Shown here one piece after another: positions 10,256 to 21,732 of a DNA stretch of 64,000 nt. The position numbers were made by a program, and so were the translations under genes. Where the stretch lies: the sequence record MW749006.1. One strand, 5' to 3'. Each line of letters opens with the position of its first letter. The first letter of the stretch is position 1. Below the pieces are notes generated by a model, which saw only the letters and a program-made list of their open reading frames with translations, was not told where the DNA came from and ran no database searches.

Positions 10256-11734
10256 ATGCTTAGTTACAACATAGAAATTAGCGAGTACGGTATTCATGTA
10301 CTTCGTGTTCGTCACGGACGAGAGAGTTTAGAGTATGAGTTATCTGATATCTACAAAGAAGATGAAACTATATACTCGTTGTTTAAACATGTAAACGAAT
10401 ACGTACAGTCACTCCCTAAGACAGTACAAGCTCGTATCTTTGAAGTCTTCTCAACCTTAGATAAAGGTGAAAAGTTATTCGCAGATATTCAATACACTTA
10501 TATGCTAGAAGAGAAACTAGCTGAAGTAGTACAGCTCCTCAACTGGCCTAAGTTTAAGATCTGGTTATGTAATAAACAGTCCGAGTTAAAGATACCTGAT
10601 ACTATTGAAGTAGACTATGTTAAAGATCAAGACTTAAACACCACTGCAGATAAAACTTATGTACTAGAAGAGTATCTAGGTTTAATCTCTTACATAACGT
10701 TTGTACGTGCTTTAGCCCCAGTATACTTGGACTACTACAATTACATCAAACAAGTAACACGTCACCACTACTATAAACTCTTTATGTTGTTTGTGCGTAG
10801 TGAACTATACAGTTGTGATGAGATTGAGAAACTACGTAGCTATATAGTAGCTAACCAAGAATCTCTTGCCCCTAAGTATGAAGGTTTGATCTTTGGTGTT
10901 GGTGTGAGTGATGACGACGCTATTGATAGTTTAGTTGGTGAGATTATCTTTCATAAGTTATCAACGATAGACTTCACTACGAAAGAACACAACATCATTT
11001 CTTTTGTATTCACAACCATCCGTTACAAAAGTAATCACGGTAACACAGGACCTAATAGTATCCGTGGTAGTTCTACAGTTATTCGTGGTCAAGAAAACGA
11101 TGCGTCGTACTTTGAAGAATATCGTAAGACTTCTGATATCTCAATTGGTACAGTCATTGAACTACAACACGCTTTAAGTAATACTGAAGCTATCGTTAAC
11201 TCATTAGGGTATACTGACTTTGACTACACTCTTTACAACCGAGAGTTAAAGAACTACTTACCTGAGTTTCTAAACACGAGTCCATCTAAACTACAGATCT
11301 ATCTGTTAGGTTGGTTCTTAGGTGGGTTTATCAACCCTAGAGCTTTGTCTTATATCGAAGCACGTAAAGTTGCTGAGTTATTGTTGTTAGCTAAAGTAGT
11401 GTTGCTACAGAAAGGACATCTGTTTATGGCTATGTTCTTAAGTTCATATCGCACTGATTTTACAACGCACATTAACGTTATTGTTAAGAACGTGTTAGAT
11501 AAGAACTTAGTGGCTGAGCTGAAAGATAGTTATAGTTACATTATGGGTGAAGATAAAGTATCCATAATCGAGAACACTATCACTGAAACAGGTAAAGAAA
11601 TGAGTAACTCAGTTTGGGTTCCTATTGGTCTACCTAAAGGTATGGAGAATCTAATCTCACAAGAAGGCTATTTATTAATTCCGTCTGATATTAACGATCA
11701 GATTTGTAAGTACATCAAACTCGTAAACAACTAA
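10256..11734 (+). CDS. Non-virion RNAP promoter-specificity subunit (phiKZ gp68-like)
   Basis: 492 aa, helical; size and synteny in the core block. Confidence 0.65.
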   Translation: MLSYNIEISEYGIHVLRVRHGRESLEYELSDIYKEDETIYSLFKHVNEYVQSLPKTVQARIFEVFSTLDKGEKLFADIQYTYMLEEKLAEVVQLLNWPKFKIWLCNKQSELKIPDTIEVDYVKDQDLNTTADKTYVLEEYLGLISYITFVRALAPVYLDYYNYIKQVTRHHYYKLFMLFVRSELYSCDEIEKLRSYIVANQESLAPKYEGLIFGVGVSDDDAIDSLVGEIIFHKLSTIDFTTKEHNIISFVFTTIRYKSNHGNTGPNSIRGSSTVIRGQENDASYFEEYRKTSDISIGTVIELQHALSNTEAIVNSLGYTDFDYTLYNRELKNYLPEFLNTSPSKLQIYLLGWFLGGFINPRALSYIEARKVAELLLLAKVVLLQKGHLFMAMFLSSYRTDFTTHINVIVKNVLDKNLVAELKDSYSYIMGEDKVSIIENTITETGKEMSNSVWVPIGLPKGMENLISQEGYLLIPSDINDQICKYIKLVNN

Positions 11735-11754: not shown

Positions 11755-13218
11755 ATGTTCGGTAGTAAGTTTATTATAGAAGAACTAATCTATATCCCCA
11801 TGGGTACACATAACCCAATGTTCAATCGTCCGTATCAAATTAACGTTACAGATCACGCTATCAGTACGTTACAAGATCGTATGTGTGAAATGAACAGTGC
11901 TATTGTTACCCCTGCAATGTTGACTGACTTATCTGGAGATATGTTACAGTCTAGTTCCGTGGCATATGACACTCGTATTGATACTTCATGGGTATCGCAG
12001 CGTCGATTCATTTTCTTGTTGAAAGTGCGTAGTGTCGAGATGGGTGGAGTGGAGATTCTCTCTTATATCCAAGGTTACACTGAGTACGATGGTATCTCAG
12101 ATCAAGGACATATTGATCTTAACCTTAACCATGTAATCAATAACGTTATCGAAACAACTAACCAAATAACCCGTACTCCAATGGGCGTGTCTCAGCGAGA
12201 GAAGTTGTATCGCATCTATAACGTAATGGGTTCAGACGGTGTTGGTGAATACTACACTCAACGTCCAACTGACATCATGCAAACAATCGAAGCTACTGAA
12301 CGATATAACAGCTATCAGATGTCTGAGATGGATCAGTTCCAGTTAGCTGGTAGCACTATCTCTCCTTACAACAATAAGACTGTTGGTAGTTTAACTGATA
12401 ACTCCGTTGGTTCCGAGTTCCTTAGTAAGACTTTATCTTCAGGTATCTTAGCACATAAGAGTCGAGATATTGTAGTTGGTTCATTTGAAGTGAATGATCA
12501 GTCATCCACAGACACTATGTTACCAGAGCCTAGTATCTCCGATAACCGATTCATTAAAGCGTTGTCAGTTGGTAAAGGTCAGATGGTAACAAGTCCATTG
12601 TTTACTTTCTCTCAACTACAACAGTTCGATAACACCATCTACGATCGCTTTAAAGTAATTAACCTAACTAAGGAGTATGTTGATGTTAACATGTTGAACA
12701 CTCCAGAAGTTGGTGAGTACTGGAAAGGTCAAGATCCTGTTACAGTTAAAGCATATTCTCTATTAGAGAGTTCTGTAGCCATGGCTGTTAAATATGGTTT
12801 CAGTAAGCTTTACTTTGTAGCTAGTAACATGATGAATCCTTCAGCAGGAATGACTGTATATATTACATACTTCCAGAGTTTCATGAAGATTGATGATGCT
12901 GGTTTTAACTCTCTGTTAGAGATATTCAAAGAGAAGTTCTCCACAGATATCTTTATGGCAGAAACCTCCGCTGGTCGTATACCTTTACATATGGAATGTT
13001 ACGTAGACTTACTGGGAACTAGTAAAGTTCTTCTAGAGTACGCAGGATATCCATCTACCTGGTATACTGTACCTACAACAGCTAACAGCGCTTTCTCTAG
13101 CGTAGTAACTCCTGATGGTAATGCGTTAAGTACTCTAGCAGATAACTTCGGTGCACTAACACAAGCATTAACCACAAGACCTGATGGTCAACAAAACTTT
13201 GATCCTTACAACTACTAG
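11755..13218 (+). CDS. PicA/Imp1-like nuclear import factor (phiKZ gp69-like)
   Basis: 487 aa; GTHNPMFNRPY and QGYT motifs; synteny after gp68-like gene. Confidence 0.65.
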   Translation: MFGSKFIIEELIYIPMGTHNPMFNRPYQINVTDHAISTLQDRMCEMNSAIVTPAMLTDLSGDMLQSSSVAYDTRIDTSWVSQRRFIFLLKVRSVEMGGVEILSYIQGYTEYDGISDQGHIDLNLNHVINNVIETTNQITRTPMGVSQREKLYRIYNVMGSDGVGEYYTQRPTDIMQTIEATERYNSYQMSEMDQFQLAGSTISPYNNKTVGSLTDNSVGSEFLSKTLSSGILAHKSRDIVVGSFEVNDQSSTDTMLPEPSISDNRFIKALSVGKGQMVTSPLFTFSQLQQFDNTIYDRFKVINLTKEYVDVNMLNTPEVGEYWKGQDPVTVKAYSLLESSVAMAVKYGFSKLYFVASNMMNPSAGMTVYITYFQSFMKIDDAGFNSLLEIFKEKFSTDIFMAETSAGRIPLHMECYVDLLGTSKVLLEYAGYPSTWYTVPTTANSAFSSVVTPDGNALSTLADNFGALTQALTTRPDGQQNFDPYNY

Positions 13219-13227
13219 GAGTAATTC

Positions 13228-14679
13228 ATGTCACAACTAAACCCTACGATGGACAGATTCTACCTGTCTATCTTAGACTACGCTGGGTTAGAATACACAG
13301 AAGCTGTTATTCAACCCAAGTCTAAACAAATGAACCCAATCACTGTAAATGGTAAACCTCTCACCTTACCTTACTTTGATAATCTAAAAGACCCAGGTGA
13401 ACGTACGGTACTTCATCTACTCAACGAAAACTACATCAAACCAGAAACAGCAGTGTTTGATCTATATAAGCGTACACTAACTCTAGAGCTAAACTTAAAG
13501 TTAAGTCACTTAGTAGTTACTCTTATAAACGTAGCTTCAGATCCATCTATCCAAGCTAAAGCTAAGTCAGGTGAACTAGTTGACTTGATTGGTTCGTTAG
13601 GTGATCTAGATGTCAGCGTCATTGAAGGTTTTACTAACCTATTCAAAGCAGCTAAGAAAGAGAAAGATGAAGGTTTCCTGTTTGACTTCCATCTAAAGAA
13701 GAATGGATCTATCGGTGATACTCCATATGCAGCTATCGGTAAGGTTAACTTCCATAGCTACAACGAGATGCAACGTGCGCTAGAAGACCGTTCACTTGAA
13801 TATAAGGTATACGGTACTAAGCTACGTAAGAAAGATCTAGTAGCACTCACAAACCTCTTCGCTGTGATCTTCCCTGAAGTGCAATCAGAAGAAAGTCTAG
13901 TAGAAGGTACTGACAACAAGATATTCCGTTACTTGAATATCTTACTCAAGACTTCTTACTTAGTAGCTAGTCGCATCAATGATCTAGCTAAACTGCTGGA
14001 AGAATTAAAAGAACCTAGTCTGAACGTTGAATCTCTAGTGAGTGATCTTAGTTGGTCAGGTGAATTGGAAGAACTGTACGGTATGGCTGATGCTATCCGA
14101 CTGATTCCTAGTCAAACAGACGTACGTGGCGAAGCTTCTAATAAGTTACGTGTTAATGAGTCTAAAGCAACAGTAGCACCACAGACTCAACAACAAGCAC
14201 CTCAGCCACAACAACCACCTACATTCCAACCACCACCACAACAAGCTCCTCAATCAGTAGCACAACAACAAGCTCCTCAATCAACTACACCACCTTCTGC
14301 TGAAGATATCATTCGTGGATTAGCCACACAACAACAGATGAATCCTTGGCAGCAACAACAGATGATGAGTCAACAACCTATGATGCCTCCACAGCAACAA
14401 GTCCACTTACCTATGTGGGCGCAACAAGAACTAATGAAACAACAACCACAGATGCAACAACAGATGCAACCTCAACAATGGCAACAACCGCATCAGTATC
14501 CACAACAACAACAGTGGCAACAACCTCAGATGCAACCACAGATGCAACCTCAACAATGGCAACAACCACATCAGTACCCTCCACAGATGCAACTACAGAT
14601 GCCTGTAGTTGCTCCATGGGAAACCCAACCACAACAATCAGGATTACAAGTTAATCCAATGTTCATGCAACGTTACTAA
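13228..14679 (+). CDS. phiKZ gp70-like core protein with Q/P-rich low-complexity C-terminus
   Basis: LTLP...FHLLNE motif; about 160-aa Gln/Pro/Met-rich tail; synteny. Confidence 0.65.
   Translation: MSQLNPTMDRFYLSILDYAGLEYTEAVIQPKSKQMNPITVNGKPLTLPYFDNLKDPGERTVLHLLNENYIKPETAVFDLYKRTLTLELNLKLSHLVVTLINVASDPSIQAKAKSGELVDLIGSLGDLDVSVIEGFTNLFKAAKKEKDEGFLFDFHLKKNGSIGDTPYAAIGKVNFHSYNEMQRALEDRSLEYKVYGTKLRKKDLVALTNLFAVIFPEVQSEESLVEGTDNKIFRYLNILLKTSYLVASRINDLAKLLEELKEPSLNVESLVSDLSWSGELEELYGMADAIRLIPSQTDVRGEASNKLRVNESKATVAPQTQQQAPQPQQPPTFQPPPQQAPQSVAQQQAPQSTTPPSAEDIIRGLATQQQMNPWQQQQMMSQQPMMPPQQQVHLPMWAQQELMKQQPQMQQQMQPQQWQQPHQYPQQQQWQQPQMQPQMQPQQWQQPHQYPPQMQLQMPVVAPWETQPQQSGLQVNPMFMQRY
14461..14579 (+). 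repeat. Coding tandem repeat (QMQPQQWQQPHQYP x2, 78-bp period)
   Basis: 41-bp near-identical units at 14461 and 14539. Confidence 0.85.
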
Positions 14680-14694
14680 CCAGTAACAAAGAGT

Positions 14695-14736
14695 AGAGTC
14701 CCCTAGGCATATAGCCTAGGGAACTCTTTTTTCTTT
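14695..14736. terminator. Bidirectional terminator
   Basis: ccctaggc-atata-gcctaggg plus T tract. Confidence 0.8.
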
Positions 14737-14738
14737 AG

Positions 14739-15035
14739 TTAAGATGCTGGTATCTTAGGTTTGATCGCTATTCTAAAATCATATTTCTCCCCATTATACT
14801 GATGAGGATGAGTATAACCATTTAGATACATAGTGTAAACATACAAGTCTGGTGCTATACCCATCATCTTAAACAACGAGAACAAATCTCCCTGATGTTT
14901 ATAACACTCGTCCGGAGACACTACCTGAGTTTCAAACTTATACGTATTGTTAATGAAGTCTAGATAGAGTAAATTGTTATTTAACACAACCTCATCTTTG
15001 AAACTATAATCACTATTCTGAAGGTTCTTAAGCAT
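14739..15035 (-). CDS. Small conserved jumbo-phage protein (possibly baseplate-associated)
   Basis: YQGDLFSLF..MG......TMYLNG...P..Y-type pattern; function inferred. Confidence 0.55.
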   Translation of the reverse strand: MLKNLQNSDYSFKDEVVLNNNLLYLDFINNTYKFETQVVSPDECYKHQGDLFSLFKMMGIAPDLYVYTMYLNGYTHPHQYNGEKYDFRIAIKPKIPAS

Positions 15036-15091
15036 TTTGTAACCCCTTATCTAATCAACAGATTAGAGTAGTCACTGAACAACCTATAGGT

Positions 15092-15103
15092 ACATATATA
15101 GTA
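15092..15103 (+). promoter_or_regulatory. Putative early promoter
   Basis: CTGAA-N12-ACATATATAGTA. Confidence 0.75.
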
Positions 15104-15158
15104 AGTATGACAGTGTAGTATTAACACTATTATTACTTAGCTATAGGAAACTAAAACA

Positions 15159-15989
15159 ATGGAAGAAGAAGTACAGAAACCATTACCAACTAAAAGTCAA
15201 TTAGAAAGTAGACCTATTGTTCCTGTAAACCTTAGAGACTTTAAATCTAAGATAGGAGCTTACACAATAAAACATTACCCTAGTGGTAAAGTTTATCACG
15301 GTTCTACTAACAATATATATAGTAGGTATCAAAGACACGGTTCCCATCTTAGAACACAAACTCATAACAATAAAGCTTTCATGGACTTAATGAATGAAAA
15401 CCCTTTAGCTTACATTGAATTCTTCCCCACAGATACTCGCGAAGAAGCTTACGATGTGGAACAGAAACTAATAGATCAAACTGATTCAGAACTATTACTT
15501 AACGCTTCATTAGACTCTAGAAGTACAACTAAAGGTTTGTGGATGCGCGACGAATATAGGGAAAAGTTTAGAGAAGGTATGTTAGGTAATACTCACGGTG
15601 CAGCTAACAAAGGAAGAGTTACTTCTGAAGAAACTAAAGAGTTGATTAGACAGACTAAGTTAGGAACTAAACTTTCAGTTGAAGCTAGACGCAAAATGAG
15701 TAAGGCTAGGATAGGTAATCAAAACGCCAAGGGAGTTAAACATAGCACAGAAGCTAATCTTAGAAAAGCAGAAGCTATGAAAGGTAGAGTCCACAACGCA
15801 GAACATGTAGCTAAAGTTACTCTACATAAAGTTAAGAACCGGGTAAGTATTGATGGAGTTATTTACGATCACATACGTTTAGCAGCCGAAGCTATTGGAG
15901 TAGCGTACAACACAGTTAATAAACGCTGTCAGTCACCAGACTATCCTAATTACAAATTAGTACCAGTAGAGTTAGGTGTGGAAGTGTAA
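15159..15989 (+). mobile_element. Free-standing GIY-YIG homing endonuclease with NUMOD3 repeats
   Basis: GAYTIKHYPSGKVYHGST...R...H core; repeats SEETKELIRQTKLG, SVEARRKMSKARIG, STEANLRKAEAMKG; C-terminal HTH. Confidence 0.85.
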
Positions 15990-16006
15990 GGGAAACTATC
16001 ACAGAC

Positions 16007-16018
16007 ACATATATAGTA
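16007..16018 (+). promoter_or_regulatory. Putative early promoter plus 5' hairpin (16031..16051)
   Basis: GGGAA-N12-ACATATATAGTA; gcgtggtgt-ctt-acatcacgc. Confidence 0.75.
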
Positions 16019-16079
16019 ACTACAACTAACGCGTGGTGTCTTACATCACGCTACTCTTACAAACAGACAGGAGTAACAC

Positions 16080-18167
16080 ATGACTACAAAGAGTAGTAAT
16101 AAGAAAACAGAGATCCATATGGAGTTCCTAGGGACGGCTGCAATCAACCCTTTTGTCGCTAACAACTCGAGTAGTCGTATGGTAATGGATTCTAGCCACT
16201 TTAGACAGACAGTGCCTTTAGTGTATCCAGATGAAATTACTATCAAAACTGGGATGTGTTATGAGCTCGGTAAGTACATTGATGATGTTCGTGTAGAAGA
16301 TGATTCTGTTGTACGTGGTGCTGTGTCTAAGTATCGTGAGATGAATCTAGAACATCCACCTGAGTACGCTTTACTAACTGAAATTGAACGCCACGGTGAA
16401 CCTTTCTTAGACATCATTGAGATGCCTATGTATAAAGCTTCTCATGGTTTCTTTGGTTATCAGTTAGAACCAACGCAAGAGTTCTCTGATATTGGTCACG
16501 CAAGTGTTCTGGCTAAGGATACTATCCTAGCTAAGACTACAAGCTTATCTGACTCTGGAGCTTATAAGTTTGGTGTTAGTGCTAACACAGTGTTCATGTC
16601 ACACCCATCTGTAGCTGAAGATGGTTTTGTGGTATCTCAATCGTTCTTAGATAAGACACAATTCACATCTATCACCACTCGCATCATTGATCTAGATAAG
16701 AAGTGTATGCCTCTTAATCTATACGGTAAGACTGGTGAGTTTAAGTTCATACCTGACATTGGAGAGAAGGTACGTCCAGATGGTTTGTTGTGTGCTACCC
16801 GGGAACGATACGATTGGTTATCTGTGTCTGACTTGAATGACGCTAACATCTCTGAACCAGACTACACTTTTGACTTGTTGACTTATGTTAACGTAGACTC
16901 AACTGTTATTGATATTGAAGTTATTAAGGGAGAACACTTTAAACCTGAGTATCCTGAATCAATGCGAGTTCAGTTGGATAAGTATTATGACATGTTTATT
17001 AACTACTGTAGAAACGTAGTGAACAGTTATGAGAACATCCTTAAAGAGAAACGAGCTATGTATGGTAAGGACGATGCTATTCGTTTGACACCGCGTTTAC
17101 ATCGTTTCTTGACTGAGGCTAAGGTACATTTGTCTTTAGCTGATGGTGGGCGTAATAAACTGTCTTATCGTAGACAACAGATAGATCAGTATCGTGTCAA
17201 GGTAACTACTATGTCAGTGGTTCGTCCTAGTCATGGTTTTAAAATCACTGATATTCACGCTAGTAAGGGTGTTAACTGTCACGTTTTGCCTGATGAGTTT
17301 ATGCCTGTAGATGAGAATGGTGTTCGTGCTGATGTGATTGCAGATAACACAAGTACCATCTCGCGTATGAACTTAGGTCGTGCTTATGAGAGTTACTTGG
17401 GGGCTTGTAGTCGAGATAACAGAACAAGATTGATTAATTACTTTGTACCTAAATATGGTCAGAGTGTGGAAGCGGTGGATGATGCTGACTTAGAGTACTT
17501 TCGTAACTATGTTACGGGTATGTATGAGTTAATCAATCCTGATATGGTTGAGTTCCTTAATGGATTAGACTCAGATGGATTAAGAGCACATTTACACTCA
17601 GTGTTGTTTGAGGACTTGTACTTGTACTTCCCTCCAGATAACGCTATTAACATTGTAGACGTGATTAGACGCTTAGAGGAAACTCCTTATAAACCACATC
17701 TTGGTAAAGTGAGTTACATGGATGACTTAGGTAATTATGTAACTACAGATGAAAACATTCGAATGGGTAAGTTATACTTCTTAGTGTTAGAGAAGATAGC
17801 TAATGACTATTCAGCTGTGAGTAGTTCACGTGTGAATAACTTTGGTTTCCCTATCCGTACTAATAACCGTATAGATAAGTTTAAGTATCCACATAGCTTA
17901 GCACCAACTAAAACGTTGGGTGAGACTGAGGTTCGAATCATTACTAGTTATACTCCACCGGAGACTATAGCTGAGTTAGTGGATCAGAACTTGAGTTTGA
18001 CTACACATAAACAAATCATTAAACAGATACTGGAGAGTGGTACAGCTTTTGATGGTAATCTACATCTAGATAGAACAGCTAATCCGTACGGTAACTCTAA
18101 GTCGTTAGCTGTACTGAAACACATGTTCAACGCTTCTGGATTTGACTTCACCAAGAGTAACGATTAA
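16080..18167 (+). CDS. Non-virion RNA polymerase beta subunit, C-terminal part (phiKZ gp71-73-like), uninterrupted
   Basis: NPF...SSSR..M, EDGFVVS, KITDIHASKGV, TISRMNLG, KTLGETE motifs. Confidence 0.9.
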   Translation: MTTKSSNKKTEIHMEFLGTAAINPFVANNSSSRMVMDSSHFRQTVPLVYPDEITIKTGMCYELGKYIDDVRVEDDSVVRGAVSKYREMNLEHPPEYALLTEIERHGEPFLDIIEMPMYKASHGFFGYQLEPTQEFSDIGHASVLAKDTILAKTTSLSDSGAYKFGVSANTVFMSHPSVAEDGFVVSQSFLDKTQFTSITTRIIDLDKKCMPLNLYGKTGEFKFIPDIGEKVRPDGLLCATRERYDWLSVSDLNDANISEPDYTFDLLTYVNVDSTVIDIEVIKGEHFKPEYPESMRVQLDKYYDMFINYCRNVVNSYENILKEKRAMYGKDDAIRLTPRLHRFLTEAKVHLSLADGGRNKLSYRRQQIDQYRVKVTTMSVVRPSHGFKITDIHASKGVNCHVLPDEFMPVDENGVRADVIADNTSTISRMNLGRAYESYLGACSRDNRTRLINYFVPKYGQSVEAVDDADLEYFRNYVTGMYELINPDMVEFLNGLDSDGLRAHLHSVLFEDLYLYFPPDNAINIVDVIRRLEETPYKPHLGKVSYMDDLGNYVTTDENIRMGKLYFLVLEKIANDYSAVSSSRVNNFGFPIRTNNRIDKFKYPHSLAPTKTLGETEVRIITSYTPPETIAELVDQNLSLTTHKQIIKQILESGTAFDGNLHLDRTANPYGNSKSLAVLKHMFNASGFDFTKSND

Positions 18168-18172
18168 CAACA

Positions 18173-18200
18173 ACCTCCCTTACATAGAGGGAGGTGTTTT
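18173..18200 (+). terminator. Intrinsic terminator-like hairpin
   Basis: acctccct/agggaggt plus gtttt. Confidence 0.55.
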
Positions 18201-18218
18201 AACTGGAGGTAATGTTAA

Positions 18219-20159
18219 GTGGATCTAAACGCTAGAGAGATATTCAATCAACCAAGACAGATGGTCTGGGATATACCTGATGGTTTACATGAGGTTATGT
18301 ACGAAGATGGTATAGTGAACACTGAGAACAAGAAAGACTTAGTGTTGAATCGTTATGCTTGGGAGATCATGCAGTTGTATCCTAACACTCCTATAGATAG
18401 CGTGTGGAGTGTGAGTGCTATTGTGGGTGAGGGTAACTTTGACTCTAACACTGTACCTAAGTTATTGGAAGCTATCTTTAAGCAAGTGTGTGTTCATAAT
18501 AACATTCATTTCTATAAAGATAAAGAACCGTTACTTCGGTTAGCTTACCAGACAAGCAATTGGATCTTTAATGAAGTAGTACATCGTATCTCTAGTAGTG
18601 TAACAACTATTGACGCGGTTGACTTCATTAACTTAGTTAACGATAAAGAGATTAAACAAATACATAAAGACTTAGAACCTTCTATACGTTCAGTGGAGAG
18701 TACGTACTTAGGTATCCGTAACTTTATTAAAGCAAGTCCTGTAACTAACAGACTAGCAGCAGCCTATAAGTCTAAGGCTGTTAACGATAACCAAGCTAAC
18801 CAGTGTATAGGTCCGCGTGGGTTTGTTACTGACTTAGATAGAACGGTGTTTAGACAACCTATCTTGAATGGTTATATTCGTGGTATGGGTGATCTGTTTG
18901 AGTTGTTAGCAGAGTCTCGTACAGCTGCTAAGTCACTGAACGCACAAGAGAGTCACGTACGTATTTCTGAGTATGCTTCTCGTCGAGTACAATTATTGAC
19001 TATGACTGTAGCTGAGACAGAACCAGGTGACTGTGGTAGTACAGAGTACATGGACATGTTAATGACTCCTAAACGACTACGTAATATGATTGGAATCTAT
19101 TATATAGATCCTGATAGTAACTCTTTACGTTATCTGGATGGAACTGAAGAACATCTATCTGAACAAATCATTAAGATACGTACTCCGTTTGGGTGTAAAC
19201 ATCTCGTTGAGACTAAAGTGTGTTCAGTGTGTTTAGGTAAGATCTCTGAGAATCTTAAAGAGAACTCAAACTTAGGTTACACGATGACTTCATTCTTGAT
19301 GGAGAAACTAACACAATCTATTTTGTCTACTAAACACTTGATCAGGTCTGTTCGTAAGACAATGATTCAGCTGGAAGGTATGGCAGTAAAGTACTTTAAT
19401 ATTAAGAATGGAGATGAATACTATCTAAATAAGAACTTAGACTTAACCCACTTAGATATAATCCTACCCGGTAACCGTATGGGTAGACTAACAGATATAC
19501 TTAGCTTACAACACACCAACGTTTCTTTAACTAGAGCAGGTGAGTTAGACGCTATTAGTATACGTGATAATAGTAAGAAAACAACCTTCACTGAGTCTGT
19601 TAGTATATCATATCGAGATCGTGAATCTGTTATAACTAAAGAGTTCTTGGACTACATTAAGAAGACTACGTTTGAAACAGATGCTCGTGGTAATTTCATT
19701 ATTCCTCTAGCTGGATATGATAAAAGAGAACCTATCTTTGTTACACCGTTGAAAGAAGATAACGTACTTGCTTTTGTTAATAAGATTGCAGATGTTATTG
19801 AGAAGACTAAGACTCTGAAAGGTAAACCTGTTTGTCCTTATGACAAATATGTAGAGTTGTTTGATATGGTCTTAGAACGATTTGAGTGTAACTTAACTGT
19901 AGTTGGTGTAATGATTTATGCTATTACAGCTAAGAATGCTCTTGACGGTGACTTTAGTCTAGGTAGAAACTCTGTTAACAGTTCTTGTGTTGACGCAGCT
20001 ACATTGTTTAGAAGTCGTAGTGTCAGTCAGTTGCTGGTATATGAACGACAAACTCCAGAACTCATCAAGAAACCAATCGGTCTCTTCAATGCTGGTAAAC
20101 GAACGGATCATCCTTTTGATGTCCTATTCATACCTAATGAGATGCTGGGTACATCATAA
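18219..20159 (+). CDS. Non-virion RNA polymerase beta' subunit, C-terminal part (phiKZ gp74-like)
   Basis: QCIGPRG, ESR.AAK, DCGS, RTP.GC...VCSVCLG Zn site, TQSILSTKH. Confidence 0.9.
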   Translation: MDLNAREIFNQPRQMVWDIPDGLHEVMYEDGIVNTENKKDLVLNRYAWEIMQLYPNTPIDSVWSVSAIVGEGNFDSNTVPKLLEAIFKQVCVHNNIHFYKDKEPLLRLAYQTSNWIFNEVVHRISSSVTTIDAVDFINLVNDKEIKQIHKDLEPSIRSVESTYLGIRNFIKASPVTNRLAAAYKSKAVNDNQANQCIGPRGFVTDLDRTVFRQPILNGYIRGMGDLFELLAESRTAAKSLNAQESHVRISEYASRRVQLLTMTVAETEPGDCGSTEYMDMLMTPKRLRNMIGIYYIDPDSNSLRYLDGTEEHLSEQIIKIRTPFGCKHLVETKVCSVCLGKISENLKENSNLGYTMTSFLMEKLTQSILSTKHLIRSVRKTMIQLEGMAVKYFNIKNGDEYYLNKNLDLTHLDIILPGNRMGRLTDILSLQHTNVSLTRAGELDAISIRDNSKKTTFTESVSISYRDRESVITKEFLDYIKKTTFETDARGNFIIPLAGYDKREPIFVTPLKEDNVLAFVNKIADVIEKTKTLKGKPVCPYDKYVELFDMVLERFECNLTVVGVMIYAITAKNALDGDFSLGRNSVNSSCVDAATLFRSRSVSQLLVYERQTPELIKKPIGLFNAGKRTDHPFDVLFIPNEMLGTS

Positions 20160-20168
20160 CAAACAGAT

Positions 20169-20195
20169 AGAGTACCTTCGGGTACTCTTTTCTTT
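20169..20195 (+). terminator. Intrinsic terminator
   Basis: agagtacc-ttcg-ggtactct plus T tract. Confidence 0.8.
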
Positions 20196-20211
20196 CACAG
20201 GAGATACTAAC

Positions 20212-21732
20212 GTGTCTGTTAAACTACTCAAGTTTAATCTGTCGGTCTGTTTAGAGGTAAAAGATCCTAGATTAACACGGATGGTTAGTGACTTCTTAGA
20301 TAAGTTCTATACCTCCAAACAACAAGGTTTTGGTGCTAATCAAGATACAGACGACAAGATGTTTGCTAGTCGTGTGAAAAACTCTGGAGTCTTCTTTTTA
20401 CACAACAGACAGTTTGCTCATCTATATCACTATTTGAAAGAACAAGGTATTACTTTAGTTGCTGAAGAGGTAGAAGATTACAGAGATTACATAGTAAAGA
20501 AGACTAAATACAAAGTAAGAGAAGGTTGGAAGCTACGTGATGCTCAAGTGCCAGTCTCTGAGTTCCTGTTAGACGATCCTAGTGGTTCTAAACTAGTACC
20601 CCTTGCAACTGGGTCAGGTAAGACAGCTACAGCTCTAATCACACTAGGAGCTCTCAAGAAACGATTTGCTATTATCATCCTACCGTTCTTAATGGATAAG
20701 TGGGTATTAGATATAGTAGAGATTCACGAAGCTAATACTGAAGATGTTCTGTTAGTTCAAGGTTTCAAAGCTTTAGCTACTCTTATAGATATGGCAAAAG
20801 AAGGAGATGTTAACTGTGATTACTTTCTAATCAGTAATAGAACTATGCAGGATTTCATTAAAGCATATGAAGCTGATCCAGAAGGTTGTATAGAGATCTA
20901 CGGTTGTAGTCCTATTGAATTGTTTCCGTTGTTAGGTATTGGTGTTCTTCTGATTGATGAAGTTCACATGTCCTTTCATAGTGTCTTTAAGACTCTAATA
21001 CATACTAACGTAGAGTTCCAAATAGGACTCTCAGCTACCTTACTATCAGAAGACCCGTTAGTAACAAGGATACACAACGTAGTATATAAGAAAGAAAATG
21101 TGTATGGCGATAGGATGATACAGAAGTATGCTGACGTTTATCCTATTACGTATAACATCCAAGAAGATAAGATGCGTTTCATTAAGACAGCTAACTATGG
21201 TTCTAAGAACTATTCACATATAGCCTATGAACAAAGCATCATGAAAAACCACAGTCTATTACAATCCTACTTTAAACTCATAGAGTCTGTAGCTGAAGAT
21301 TATTTTAATCAATTCTATATGGAAAACGATAAGTTAATTATCTTCGTATCTACAATTAAATTTGCTACCATATTAACTGAGAGAATGGAACAATTCTTTC
21401 CTAAGTTATTGGTATCACGTTACTGTGAGAAAGATCTTTACGATGAGATGATTAAAGCTGATGTGATTGTAACTACAGTTTTGTCAGCAGGTACTGGTTT
21501 GGATATACCTAACCTACGTGTTGGTATACAGACAGTTTGTATTTCATCTACTGTAATGAACATCCAGAGTCTTGGACGTTTGCGTAAGCTTAAAGACAGA
21601 GATGTTAAGTTCTGCTATCTATACACTAACAACATACCTAAACAGTATCAGTACCATCGTAAACGTATGGAGATATTTGCTGATCGAGTTGCTACTATTA
21701 CACAAAGACGTAGTAGAGTTGATCTACGCTAG
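20212..21732 (+). CDS. SF2 (DEAD/UvsW-like) helicase (phiKZ gp75-like)
   Basis: TGSGKT, DEVH, GLSAT, QSLGRLR; GTG 20212 with CAGGAG SD. Confidence 0.9.
   Translation: MSVKLLKFNLSVCLEVKDPRLTRMVSDFLDKFYTSKQQGFGANQDTDDKMFASRVKNSGVFFLHNRQFAHLYHYLKEQGITLVAEEVEDYRDYIVKKTKYKVREGWKLRDAQVPVSEFLLDDPSGSKLVPLATGSGKTATALITLGALKKRFAIIILPFLMDKWVLDIVEIHEANTEDVLLVQGFKALATLIDMAKEGDVNCDYFLISNRTMQDFIKAYEADPEGCIEIYGCSPIELFPLLGIGVLLIDEVHMSFHSVFKTLIHTNVEFQIGLSATLLSEDPLVTRIHNVVYKKENVYGDRMIQKYADVYPITYNIQEDKMRFIKTANYGSKNYSHIAYEQSIMKNHSLLQSYFKLIESVAEDYFNQFYMENDKLIIFVSTIKFATILTERMEQFFPKLLVSRYCEKDLYDEMIKADVIVTTVLSAGTGLDIPNLRVGIQTVCISSTVMNIQSLGRLRKLKDRDVKFCYLYTNNIPKQYQYHRKRMEIFADRVATITQRRSRVDLR

Follow-up and report, generated by a model that had tools for sequence, protein, structure and literature searches.

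How can a selfish gene come to stand directly upstream of an essential gene, and what becomes of the promoter of that essential gene? The question is raised by a locus in Bacillus phage vB_BspM_AgentSmith (MW749006.1; 200,233 bp). The whole stretch of DNA that was analyzed, called the window here, has 64,000 nt and is 100% identical to this record; record coordinates are obtained by adding 124000 to the window coordinates, which are used below unless the record is named. In this locus gp132 (15159-15989, + strand), which encodes a free-standing GIY-YIG homing endonuclease homologue of 276 aa recognized by Pfam and PHROG, lies between two copies of an early-type promoter, P1 and P2, ahead of the gene for a beta-type subunit of RNA polymerase (RNAP). 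We consider it highly probable that gp132 is a free-standing endonuclease cassette located between two promoters in the regulatory DNA ahead of the RNAP beta gene, and that its gain and loss are paired with those of a promoter copy.

Anatomy of the locus and its promoters

P1 (15077-15103) and P2 (15992-16018), both on the + strand, follow the pattern GAA-N12-ACATATATAGTA. The GAA of P1 lies at 15077 and its core at 15092-15103; the corresponding positions of P2 are 15992 and 16007-16018. The initial annotation had described two copies of this motif bracketing a GIY-YIG gene ahead of RNAP beta, the second of them right after the endonuclease stop codon. The locus bears out this description: both copies are present without a mismatch to the pattern, the TAA of gp132 occupies 15987-15989, and the GAA of P2 begins 3 nt later.

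The motif is not confined to this locus. With up to two mismatches allowed, the pattern has 12 hits in the window, all on the + strand, where 0.55 are expected and none of 100 shuffled sequences reaches 12. In the whole genome, rebuilt from the GenBank record for this count, the 12-mer core with at most one mismatch occurs 25 times on the + strand and never on the − strand. Manual mapping onto the annotation showed that 20 of the 25 copies are intergenic and lie 25-239 nt before a + strand gene, and the annotation names no structural gene behind any of these 20 copies. The RNAP subunit genes gp102 and gp133 each have an exact copy in front of them, and the chimallin gene has a copy with two mismatches. 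Beyond the first pattern, G-15, A-14, A-13, T-7, A-6, A-4, and T-1 are conserved, as are TA at +3/+4 and A at +6 after the end of the core, which gives the consensus GAA-N12-ACATATATAGTA-NN-TA-N-A. The motif is also kept at orthologous positions in two relatives from IMG/VR, L006 and L007, at only 55% protein identity.

These properties resemble those of the virion-RNAP promoters of AR9 and phiKZ, which are likewise extended AT-rich elements present in a few dozen copies, strand specific, and located before early-type genes, including those of the non-virion RNAP subunits (PMC5312081). The early promoter read by the AR9 virion RNAP, an extended AT-rich element, has the consensus AAATATATATTAT-N6-G (PMC5312081), which differs from that of AgentSmith. 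Homology and gene context make the assignment of the motif as an early promoter a well-founded prediction. Two further copies deserve mention. A near-copy of the core (ATATATATAGTA, one mismatch) without the upstream GAA lies inside the endonuclease gene at 15313-15324 and is probably due to chance. An exact copy (core at record 11579) falls within gp13 as annotated (record 11551-11590), 28 nt past its start codon, which may have been placed too far upstream.

Two copies of one motif around one gene raise the possibility that P1 and P2 arose by a recent tandem duplication, such as a target-site or repair duplication at the insertion. The 12-nt core and one further base are identical, and the spacing to each flank is preserved, as such a duplication would leave them. 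However, these 13 nt are the only contiguous identity between the two copies, their upstream elements (−15 to −1) agree at 6 of 15 positions, and each copy is closer to a promoter of another phage lineage than to its partner. Any two promoters in the genome agree on average at 7.6 ± 1.8 of the 15 upstream positions. Because the agreement of P1 and P2 falls below this mean, they are not duplicates of each other. A recent duplication is therefore rejected on the 6 of 15 matching positions, and we regard it as extremely improbable.

Two Pfam matches of gp132 exceed their cut-offs, that of the GIY-YIG domain (PF01541) with 33.9 bits (cut-off, 22.6) and that of NUMOD3 with 28.4 bits (cut-off, 20.4), and the protein matches the PHROG 'homing endonuclease' at 7.5e-31. 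When gp132 is aligned with six homologues, G33, Y35, Y46, G48, R56, H60, E101, and N115 are invariant. Because these catalytic-type positions are invariant among the homologues, gp132 looks intact. The protein resembles I-TevI of the T4 td intron in its N-terminal GIY-YIG domain, in the Tyr/Tyr/Arg/His/Glu/Asn positions, in linker repeats of the NUMOD3 type, and in a weak match to the DNA-binding domain. However, I-TevI is intron encoded and gp132 is not, the I-TevI_DNA-bd match is below threshold (18.5 bits versus the Pfam cut-off of 27), and a search of solved structures by sequence returned I-TevI (1mk0) only at E = 0.16.

No intron was found by Rfam in 13000-21000 at E <= 0.1, and on this basis an intron-encoded endonuclease is rejected. 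This is in agreement with the initial annotation, according to which the nuclease is free standing and the RNAP open reading frame (ORF) is uninterrupted: gp132 lies outside any intron in the orientation of its RNAP neighbors, and 16080-18167 is intact. The AT skew of the endonuclease region differs from that of the RNAP gene. A parallel had also been drawn with the SLT locus, which holds the other GIY-YIG gene of the window, gp120. It can be kept as a parallel of logic; as kinship it fails, and gp120 was rejected as a relative of gp132, since the two proteins are unrelated (BLASTP E = 4.1). No relative of gp132 was found in IMG/VR, and the endonuclease is absent from the source contigs of L006 and L007. 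Residues 7-44 of gp132 (15177-15290) match tau repeat regions in four short stretches (best E = 2.4e-6), a compositional coincidence that we treat as chance.

The gene behind P2, gp133 (16080-18167, + strand), encodes a 695-aa RNAP beta-type subunit of the phiKZ gp71/73 type in one uninterrupted frame. It matches Pfam RNA_pol_Rpb2_6 and phrog_3295 (1e-166), and its best database matches are PhiPA3 gp065 and a KTN4 protein named 'non-virion RNAP subunit' (phiKZ gp71/73), so that the label of non-virion RNAP beta given to it earlier appears reasonable by homology. The closest RNAP beta match outside its own record, in the phage collection, is 33% identical.

The mRNA leader of the endonuclease (15104-15158, + strand) carries an AGGAAA ribosome-binding site, folds weakly (z = +0.87), and has no counterpart in endonuclease-free relatives. 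The RNAP beta leader (16019-16079, + strand), delimited by alignment and fold, begins with 9 nt that go with P2 and is homologous to endonuclease-free leaders from 16028 onward. It folds at −17.8 kcal/mol (z = −2.95) into two hairpins, 16031-16051 and 16052-16075, the second of which pairs with the Shine-Dalgarno sequence. The leader of the relative L014 has the same two hairpins (z = −2.82) despite sequence changes, and the two-hairpin leader may be a translational control element.

A terminator-like site was sought between 15036 and 16080, and none was found. Because there is no terminator between the endonuclease and RNAP genes, transcripts from P1 should read through into the RNAP genes. 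This bears on the proposal that the element replaces what it breaks: with no terminator before the RNAP gene, nothing need have been broken, and a replacement promoter may not have been needed. P2 is probably a way to keep RNAP expression normal rather than the rescue of a broken gene.

Alleles of the site in relatives

The initial annotation had expected endonuclease-free relatives to carry one promoter. Relatives were sought among metagenome contigs; a search with gp131, the left neighbor of the locus, yielded close ones, and additional ones came from the RNAP beta cluster. The expectation is borne out by exactly one promoter between the gp131 homologue and RNAP beta in each of seven close contigs and in two contigs of a sister lineage (L026 and L022). 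One promoter is also found in distant endonuclease-free outgroups such as L006, L007, L033, and L037. In L006 and L007 the gene order is gp128-131 followed by RNAP beta, and the single motif copy lies 57 nt (L006) and 55 nt (L007) from the gp131 start, compared with 57 nt for P1 of AgentSmith, and 63 nt and 66 nt from the RNAP start, compared with 61 nt for P2.

The seven close contigs, which come from independent samples (L014, L015, L016, L018, L023, L024, and L025; D-type), have flanks about 90% identical in DNA to those of AgentSmith. Wastewater, food, and landfill are the sources of the samples with endonuclease-free relatives. Their 130-nt intergenic region follows AgentSmith through the P1 core, continues with 8 nt (CTTAGAAT), and then enters the RNAP leader from AACGCGTGG. 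The leader thus joins 8 nt past the core in the D-type and 9 nt past the P2 core in AgentSmith. The extra DNA of AgentSmith relative to the D-type is 15104-16027 and comprises a full second promoter in addition to the endonuclease gene with its leader. The −15 to −1 element of P1 agrees with that of the D-type promoter at 14 of 15 positions. The exact promoter-leader junction pattern had no match in IMG/VR and JGI metagenomes.

The sister lineage also lacks the endonuclease and has a single promoter, with a leader specific to its own clade (L026:3872-4000, L022:1-113). The RNAP beta of L026/L022 is about 79% identical to that of AgentSmith and 86% identical to that of L019, a contig with a remnant of the endonuclease.

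All four states of the site, intact, broken, remnant, and empty, occur among close relatives. The endonuclease of L009 is intact, with 70% aa identity to gp132, and the P2 and leader of this contig are 98% identical to those of AgentSmith. In L010 the endonuclease gene is disrupted by the loss of 46 nt. Both promoters are still present in L019 and L020, where they flank a remnant of about 200 nt in which the first ~25 codons are joined to the last ~15. The stop codon of the endonuclease ORF in L009, L010, and L019 is a TAG that falls within the P2 upstream element, so that gene and P2 physically overlap in these contigs.

The clearest sign of movement is a mosaic of L013 and L010. Compared with the endonuclease-free L015, its flanks are 99% identical in gp131, 100% on the upstream side of P1, and 97% in the first 69 nt of RNAP beta. 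For the endonuclease leader, P2, and the RNAP leader, by contrast, the closest match is L019 (91-100% identity), a lineage with only about 80% identity in the flanks. One crossover maps to the P1 core and the other to the first ~18 nt of RNAP beta (about codon 6). The mosaic is the footprint expected of homing with co-conversion, and its tract shows P2 and the leader moving together with the cassette. The anatomy of the locus, the allele series, and the mosaic transfer are all read directly from the aligned DNA.

Locus matches among sequencing runs were low-share DNA metagenomes, and no RNA run was among them. Contigs assembled from four of these runs were 150-350 nt long, and none of them spanned the locus. 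Logan unitigs of L013 and L017 end exactly 5 nt after the P1 core (window 15108), where both allele types diverge, and these ends would fit the coexistence of both alleles in those samples.

The slot between gp131 and RNAP beta holds other contents in more distant contigs. In L027 (897-1082, − strand) and L028 it contains a 61-aa ORF with a CxxC...CxxC pattern, and the only promoter copy follows directly after its stop codon. In L035 (2006-3505, + strand) it contains a 499-aa protein with matches to DUF723 and a treble-clef zinc finger. In L031 (3170-3497) and L032 (3181-3476), at 55-57% identity, the gap between gp131 and RNAP beta is about 300 nt, compared with about 130 nt elsewhere, and holds no convincing ORF; these long intergenic regions could be remnants of earlier inserts or encode a non-coding RNA.

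We propose the following course of events. The cassette with gp132 is situated in the 130-nt control region between the divergent gp131 and the non-virion RNAP beta operon, giving the order P1, endonuclease leader, endonuclease gene, P2, RNAP leader, RNAP beta. The enzyme that recognizes both promoters would most likely be the injected virion RNAP, at an early stage of infection. Transcripts from P1 would cover the endonuclease gene and continue into gp133-gp134, and initiation would begin anew at P2, which has the native spacing to the hairpins of the RNAP leader. Across the relatives, gain or loss of the endonuclease always accompanies gain or loss of one promoter copy, so that the RNAP operon is never without a promoter directly before its leader. 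Gene conversion carries the cassette from one diverged lineage to another, along with P2 and leader stretches of varying length, and internal deletions later degrade it. The putative cut would presumably fall in the endonuclease-free promoter, leader, or 5' region of RNAP beta; by analogy with the T4 seg/mob endonucleases (PMC2988022), it should lie within hundreds of base pairs of the insertion, in the endonuclease-free allele. We infer the activity and timing of the promoters, the activity of the endonuclease, and its cleavage site from the sequences.

Origin of the second promoter and rival histories

Which of the two promoters came with the endonuclease is a separate matter. The initial annotation had placed the insertion between a resident promoter and the RNAP gene, with the element supplying a replacement promoter. 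The extra DNA does lie between P1 and the RNAP leader in comparison with the nearest relatives, and it does contain a complete second promoter. The polarity implied by these statements is about evenly balanced, and the need for a replacement is unsupported. For the AgentSmith lineage we give roughly even odds to P1 being the resident promoter and P2 having come with the endonuclease. Each promoter type is 'resident' in one endonuclease-free lineage, P1 in the D-type and P2 in L026/L022, and the operon promoter appears to have been swapped in one of these two lineages. Either history needs one homology-free junction, and in each case the promoter register is preserved to within 1 nt. In the outgroups L006, L007, L027, and L029 the variable promoter positions are too diverged to show the ancestral type.

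Several points weigh against the reading that we prefer. The relatives compared are metagenome contigs throughout, and L013 and L010, from the same run, are joined only by a 30-nt overlap. The single promoter of L026/L022 matches P2, not P1, at 13 of 15 positions, the best of 21 promoters, and one of the two endonuclease-free promoter types may be a secondary deletion. The P2 cores of L010 and L019 have two mismatches at positions where the motif is otherwise highly conserved, so that some lineages may have an inactive P2. Finally, promoters are dense in this genome, with for example three copies within 1.8 kb at record 91959-93721, and because of this density a gene flanked by two promoters is not in itself exceptional here.

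The match of L026/L022 to P2 leads to the opposite polarity, in which the endonuclease brought P1 and landed upstream of a resident P2, nothing was displaced, and the D-type arose by later deletion of a remnant together with P2. The P2-type promoter of L026/L022 (13 of 15) shares the initial region A.TA.AAC. and is followed by the clade-specific leader. The similarity of P2 between AgentSmith and L026 (about 80-87%) is in line with that of the flanks (about 79%), as vertical orthology predicts. The P1 upstream element is identical at 14-15 of 15 positions across lineages that are 20% different elsewhere. The stages of decay needed for this history also exist, namely, the broken gene of L010 and the remnant of L019 with its degenerate P2 core, and in L027/L028, where another small gene occupies the slot, the sole promoter copy lies directly before RNAP beta. 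However, this history requires a deletion with its endpoints exactly 8 nt past the P1 core and 9 nt past the P2 core, without homology at the junction, and the resulting D-type junction is common to seven contigs from independent samples. It also has to account for the endonuclease ORF of L009, L010, and L019, which ends in the P2 element and ties P2 to the cassette. Taken together, the arrival of P1 with the endonuclease is a possibility to which we give about one third of our weight, and what is left of that weight goes to other histories.

In a different explanation, gp132 is an ordinary early gene in a region where each gene has its own promoter, and its cassette is gained and lost by recombination between promoter copies, as in PeSL cassettes, and the nuclease has no role in its spread. 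Another gene, gp86, is also flanked by two promoter copies (record 91959 and 92577), the same slot carries other cargo in L027/L028 and L035, and both junctions hold the promoter register to within 1 nt. Shuffling mediated by PeSL is documented in T4-type phages (PMC2839356), where, as here, a repeated early promoter flanks a variable gene and the junctions keep register. The PeSL repeat, however, has a terminator stem-loop; the AgentSmith repeat has none, as no stem-loop terminator accompanies the promoter at 15036-16080, its junctions lie at the promoter edges, and its cargo is a mobility gene. P1 and P2 share only 13 contiguous nt and 6 of 15 upstream positions, and a crossover in the core predicts a hybrid of P1 upstream bases with P2 downstream bases, which neither endonuclease-free type has. 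An origin of the endonuclease-free alleles by simple crossover in the shared core was rejected on this ground. The indel junctions lie at −16 to −20 or at +8/+9 from the core, outside the 13-nt shared core, with register kept. The cargo, moreover, is a homing endonuclease homologue that looks catalytically intact from its residues, and it is accompanied by a homing-like mosaic transfer tract. We therefore regard recombination between promoter copies alone as decidedly unlikely and retain the endonuclease cassette paired with a promoter copy.

A group I intron in the RNAP beta gene of some relatives adds another element to the picture. L024 (5172-5522) and L025 (2215-2565) carry a 390-nt ORF-less group I intron (Rfam RF00028, 84.7 bits) after codon 394 of RNAP beta, and this site coincides with the break in PHROGs built from split phiKZ-type genes (residues 6-394 and 405-690). 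By alignment the site corresponds to 17261/17262 (+ strand) in AgentSmith, where it is empty, after codon 394; only ordinary synonymous differences are found there. The site lies 1.27 kb downstream of the endonuclease position. Endonuclease and intron never occur on one contig in this small sample. A mobile group I intron with an endonuclease ORF was rejected as the explanation for gp132, as AgentSmith is intron free, and the intron of L024/L025 has no ORF and is 1.27 kb away. A combined view would make gp132 and the ORF-less intron a 'collaborative homing' pair and add cycles of invasion and loss that swapped the operon promoter between lineages. In the first part of this view, the nuclease may cut the intron-less RNAP gene at codon 394, and the intron may protect its carrier; in the second part, invasion and loss of the endonuclease may have left the P1 type in one clade and the P2 type in the other. 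We regard this combination as rather unlikely.

Genomic setting, known systems, and significance

Upstream of the locus lies gp131 (14739-15035, − strand; phrog_3455), a divergent 98-aa gene of unknown function whose start codon is 57 nt from P1. Its homologue is the conserved left neighbor of RNAP beta, on the opposite strand, as far out as PhiPA3. Between gp130 (+ strand) and gp131 (− strand) there is a bidirectional terminator-like hairpin (14695-14727) with a stem of 8-14 pairs and a T-run on both strands. Downstream, gp134 (18219-20159, + strand; phrog_3015, 6.5e-135) is the next RNAP subunit gene of the same operon, and the gp133-gp134 order is kept in all relatives. Elsewhere in the genome, gp98 is a chimallin homologue (Pfam PF25677, 82 bits; PHROG 'nuclear shell protein', 3e-66) and gp95 is a homologue of the PhuZ tubulin. 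Because it encodes homologues of chimallin and PhuZ, AgentSmith belongs by gene content with the nucleus-forming jumbo phages. In the phage collection, a Megablast search matched only the phage's own record, and a literature search on AgentSmith by name returned no paper.

The closest known systems are the free-standing endonucleases of T4, namely, the seg (GIY-YIG) and mob (HNH) cassettes such as segG/gene 32 and mobE/nrdB. Seven of the free-standing endonucleases of T4 are promoterless cassettes that use upstream promoters (PMC2988022). Promoters of downstream essential genes are embedded in segG (for gene 32), segA, segE, mobB, and mobC, and a promoter is located between mobE and nrdB (PMC2988022). 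This embedded arrangement has been suggested to favor retention of the endonuclease, and no endonuclease-specific promoter in T4 is early (PMC2988022). The AgentSmith cassette resembles these systems in being intergenic and free standing in the orientation of its neighbors, in the use or sharing of an upstream phage promoter, and in the promoter of the downstream gene at the 3' end of the endonuclease, a likeness that in AgentSmith holds at the level of sequence. The patchy presence among relatives and the co-converted flanking markers are also shared. It differs in that the host is a chimallin-encoding Bacillus jumbo phage, the target is a phage RNAP subunit gene, the promoters belong to the extended AT-rich class whose recognition is attributed to a virion multisubunit RNAP, and the activity of the endonuclease is predicted. 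The locus is thus a fresh example of the T4 seg/mob logic (Edgell 2010) and not a new principle; what is new compared with T4 is the host, the promoter class, and the non-virion RNAP target.

Among nucleus-forming phages, the intron-encoded endonuclease gp210 of PhiPA3 targets the virion RNAP gene of PhiKZ and acts in competition between phages (PMC11620839; PMC12908238). In both cases a homing endonuclease is tied to an RNAP subunit gene of the chimallivirus type, with a possible role in competition during co-infection. They differ in location, since gp210 lies inside a group I intron of the virion RNAP gene and gp132 is free standing in the promoter region of the non-virion RNAP gene.

At this locus, naturally occurring alleles in the control region of an essential RNAP operon form a series that includes empty, intact, broken, remnant, and laterally transferred states. 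It indicates that a selfish gene can sit before an essential gene without costing that gene its promoter, and it carries the seg/mob logic of T4 over to phages that have multisubunit polymerases of their own. The analysis also defines a probable consensus for the early promoter of AgentSmith and a conserved RNAP leader, and the endonuclease-free alleles offer testable substrates for a role of the nuclease in competition between co-infecting jumbo phages.

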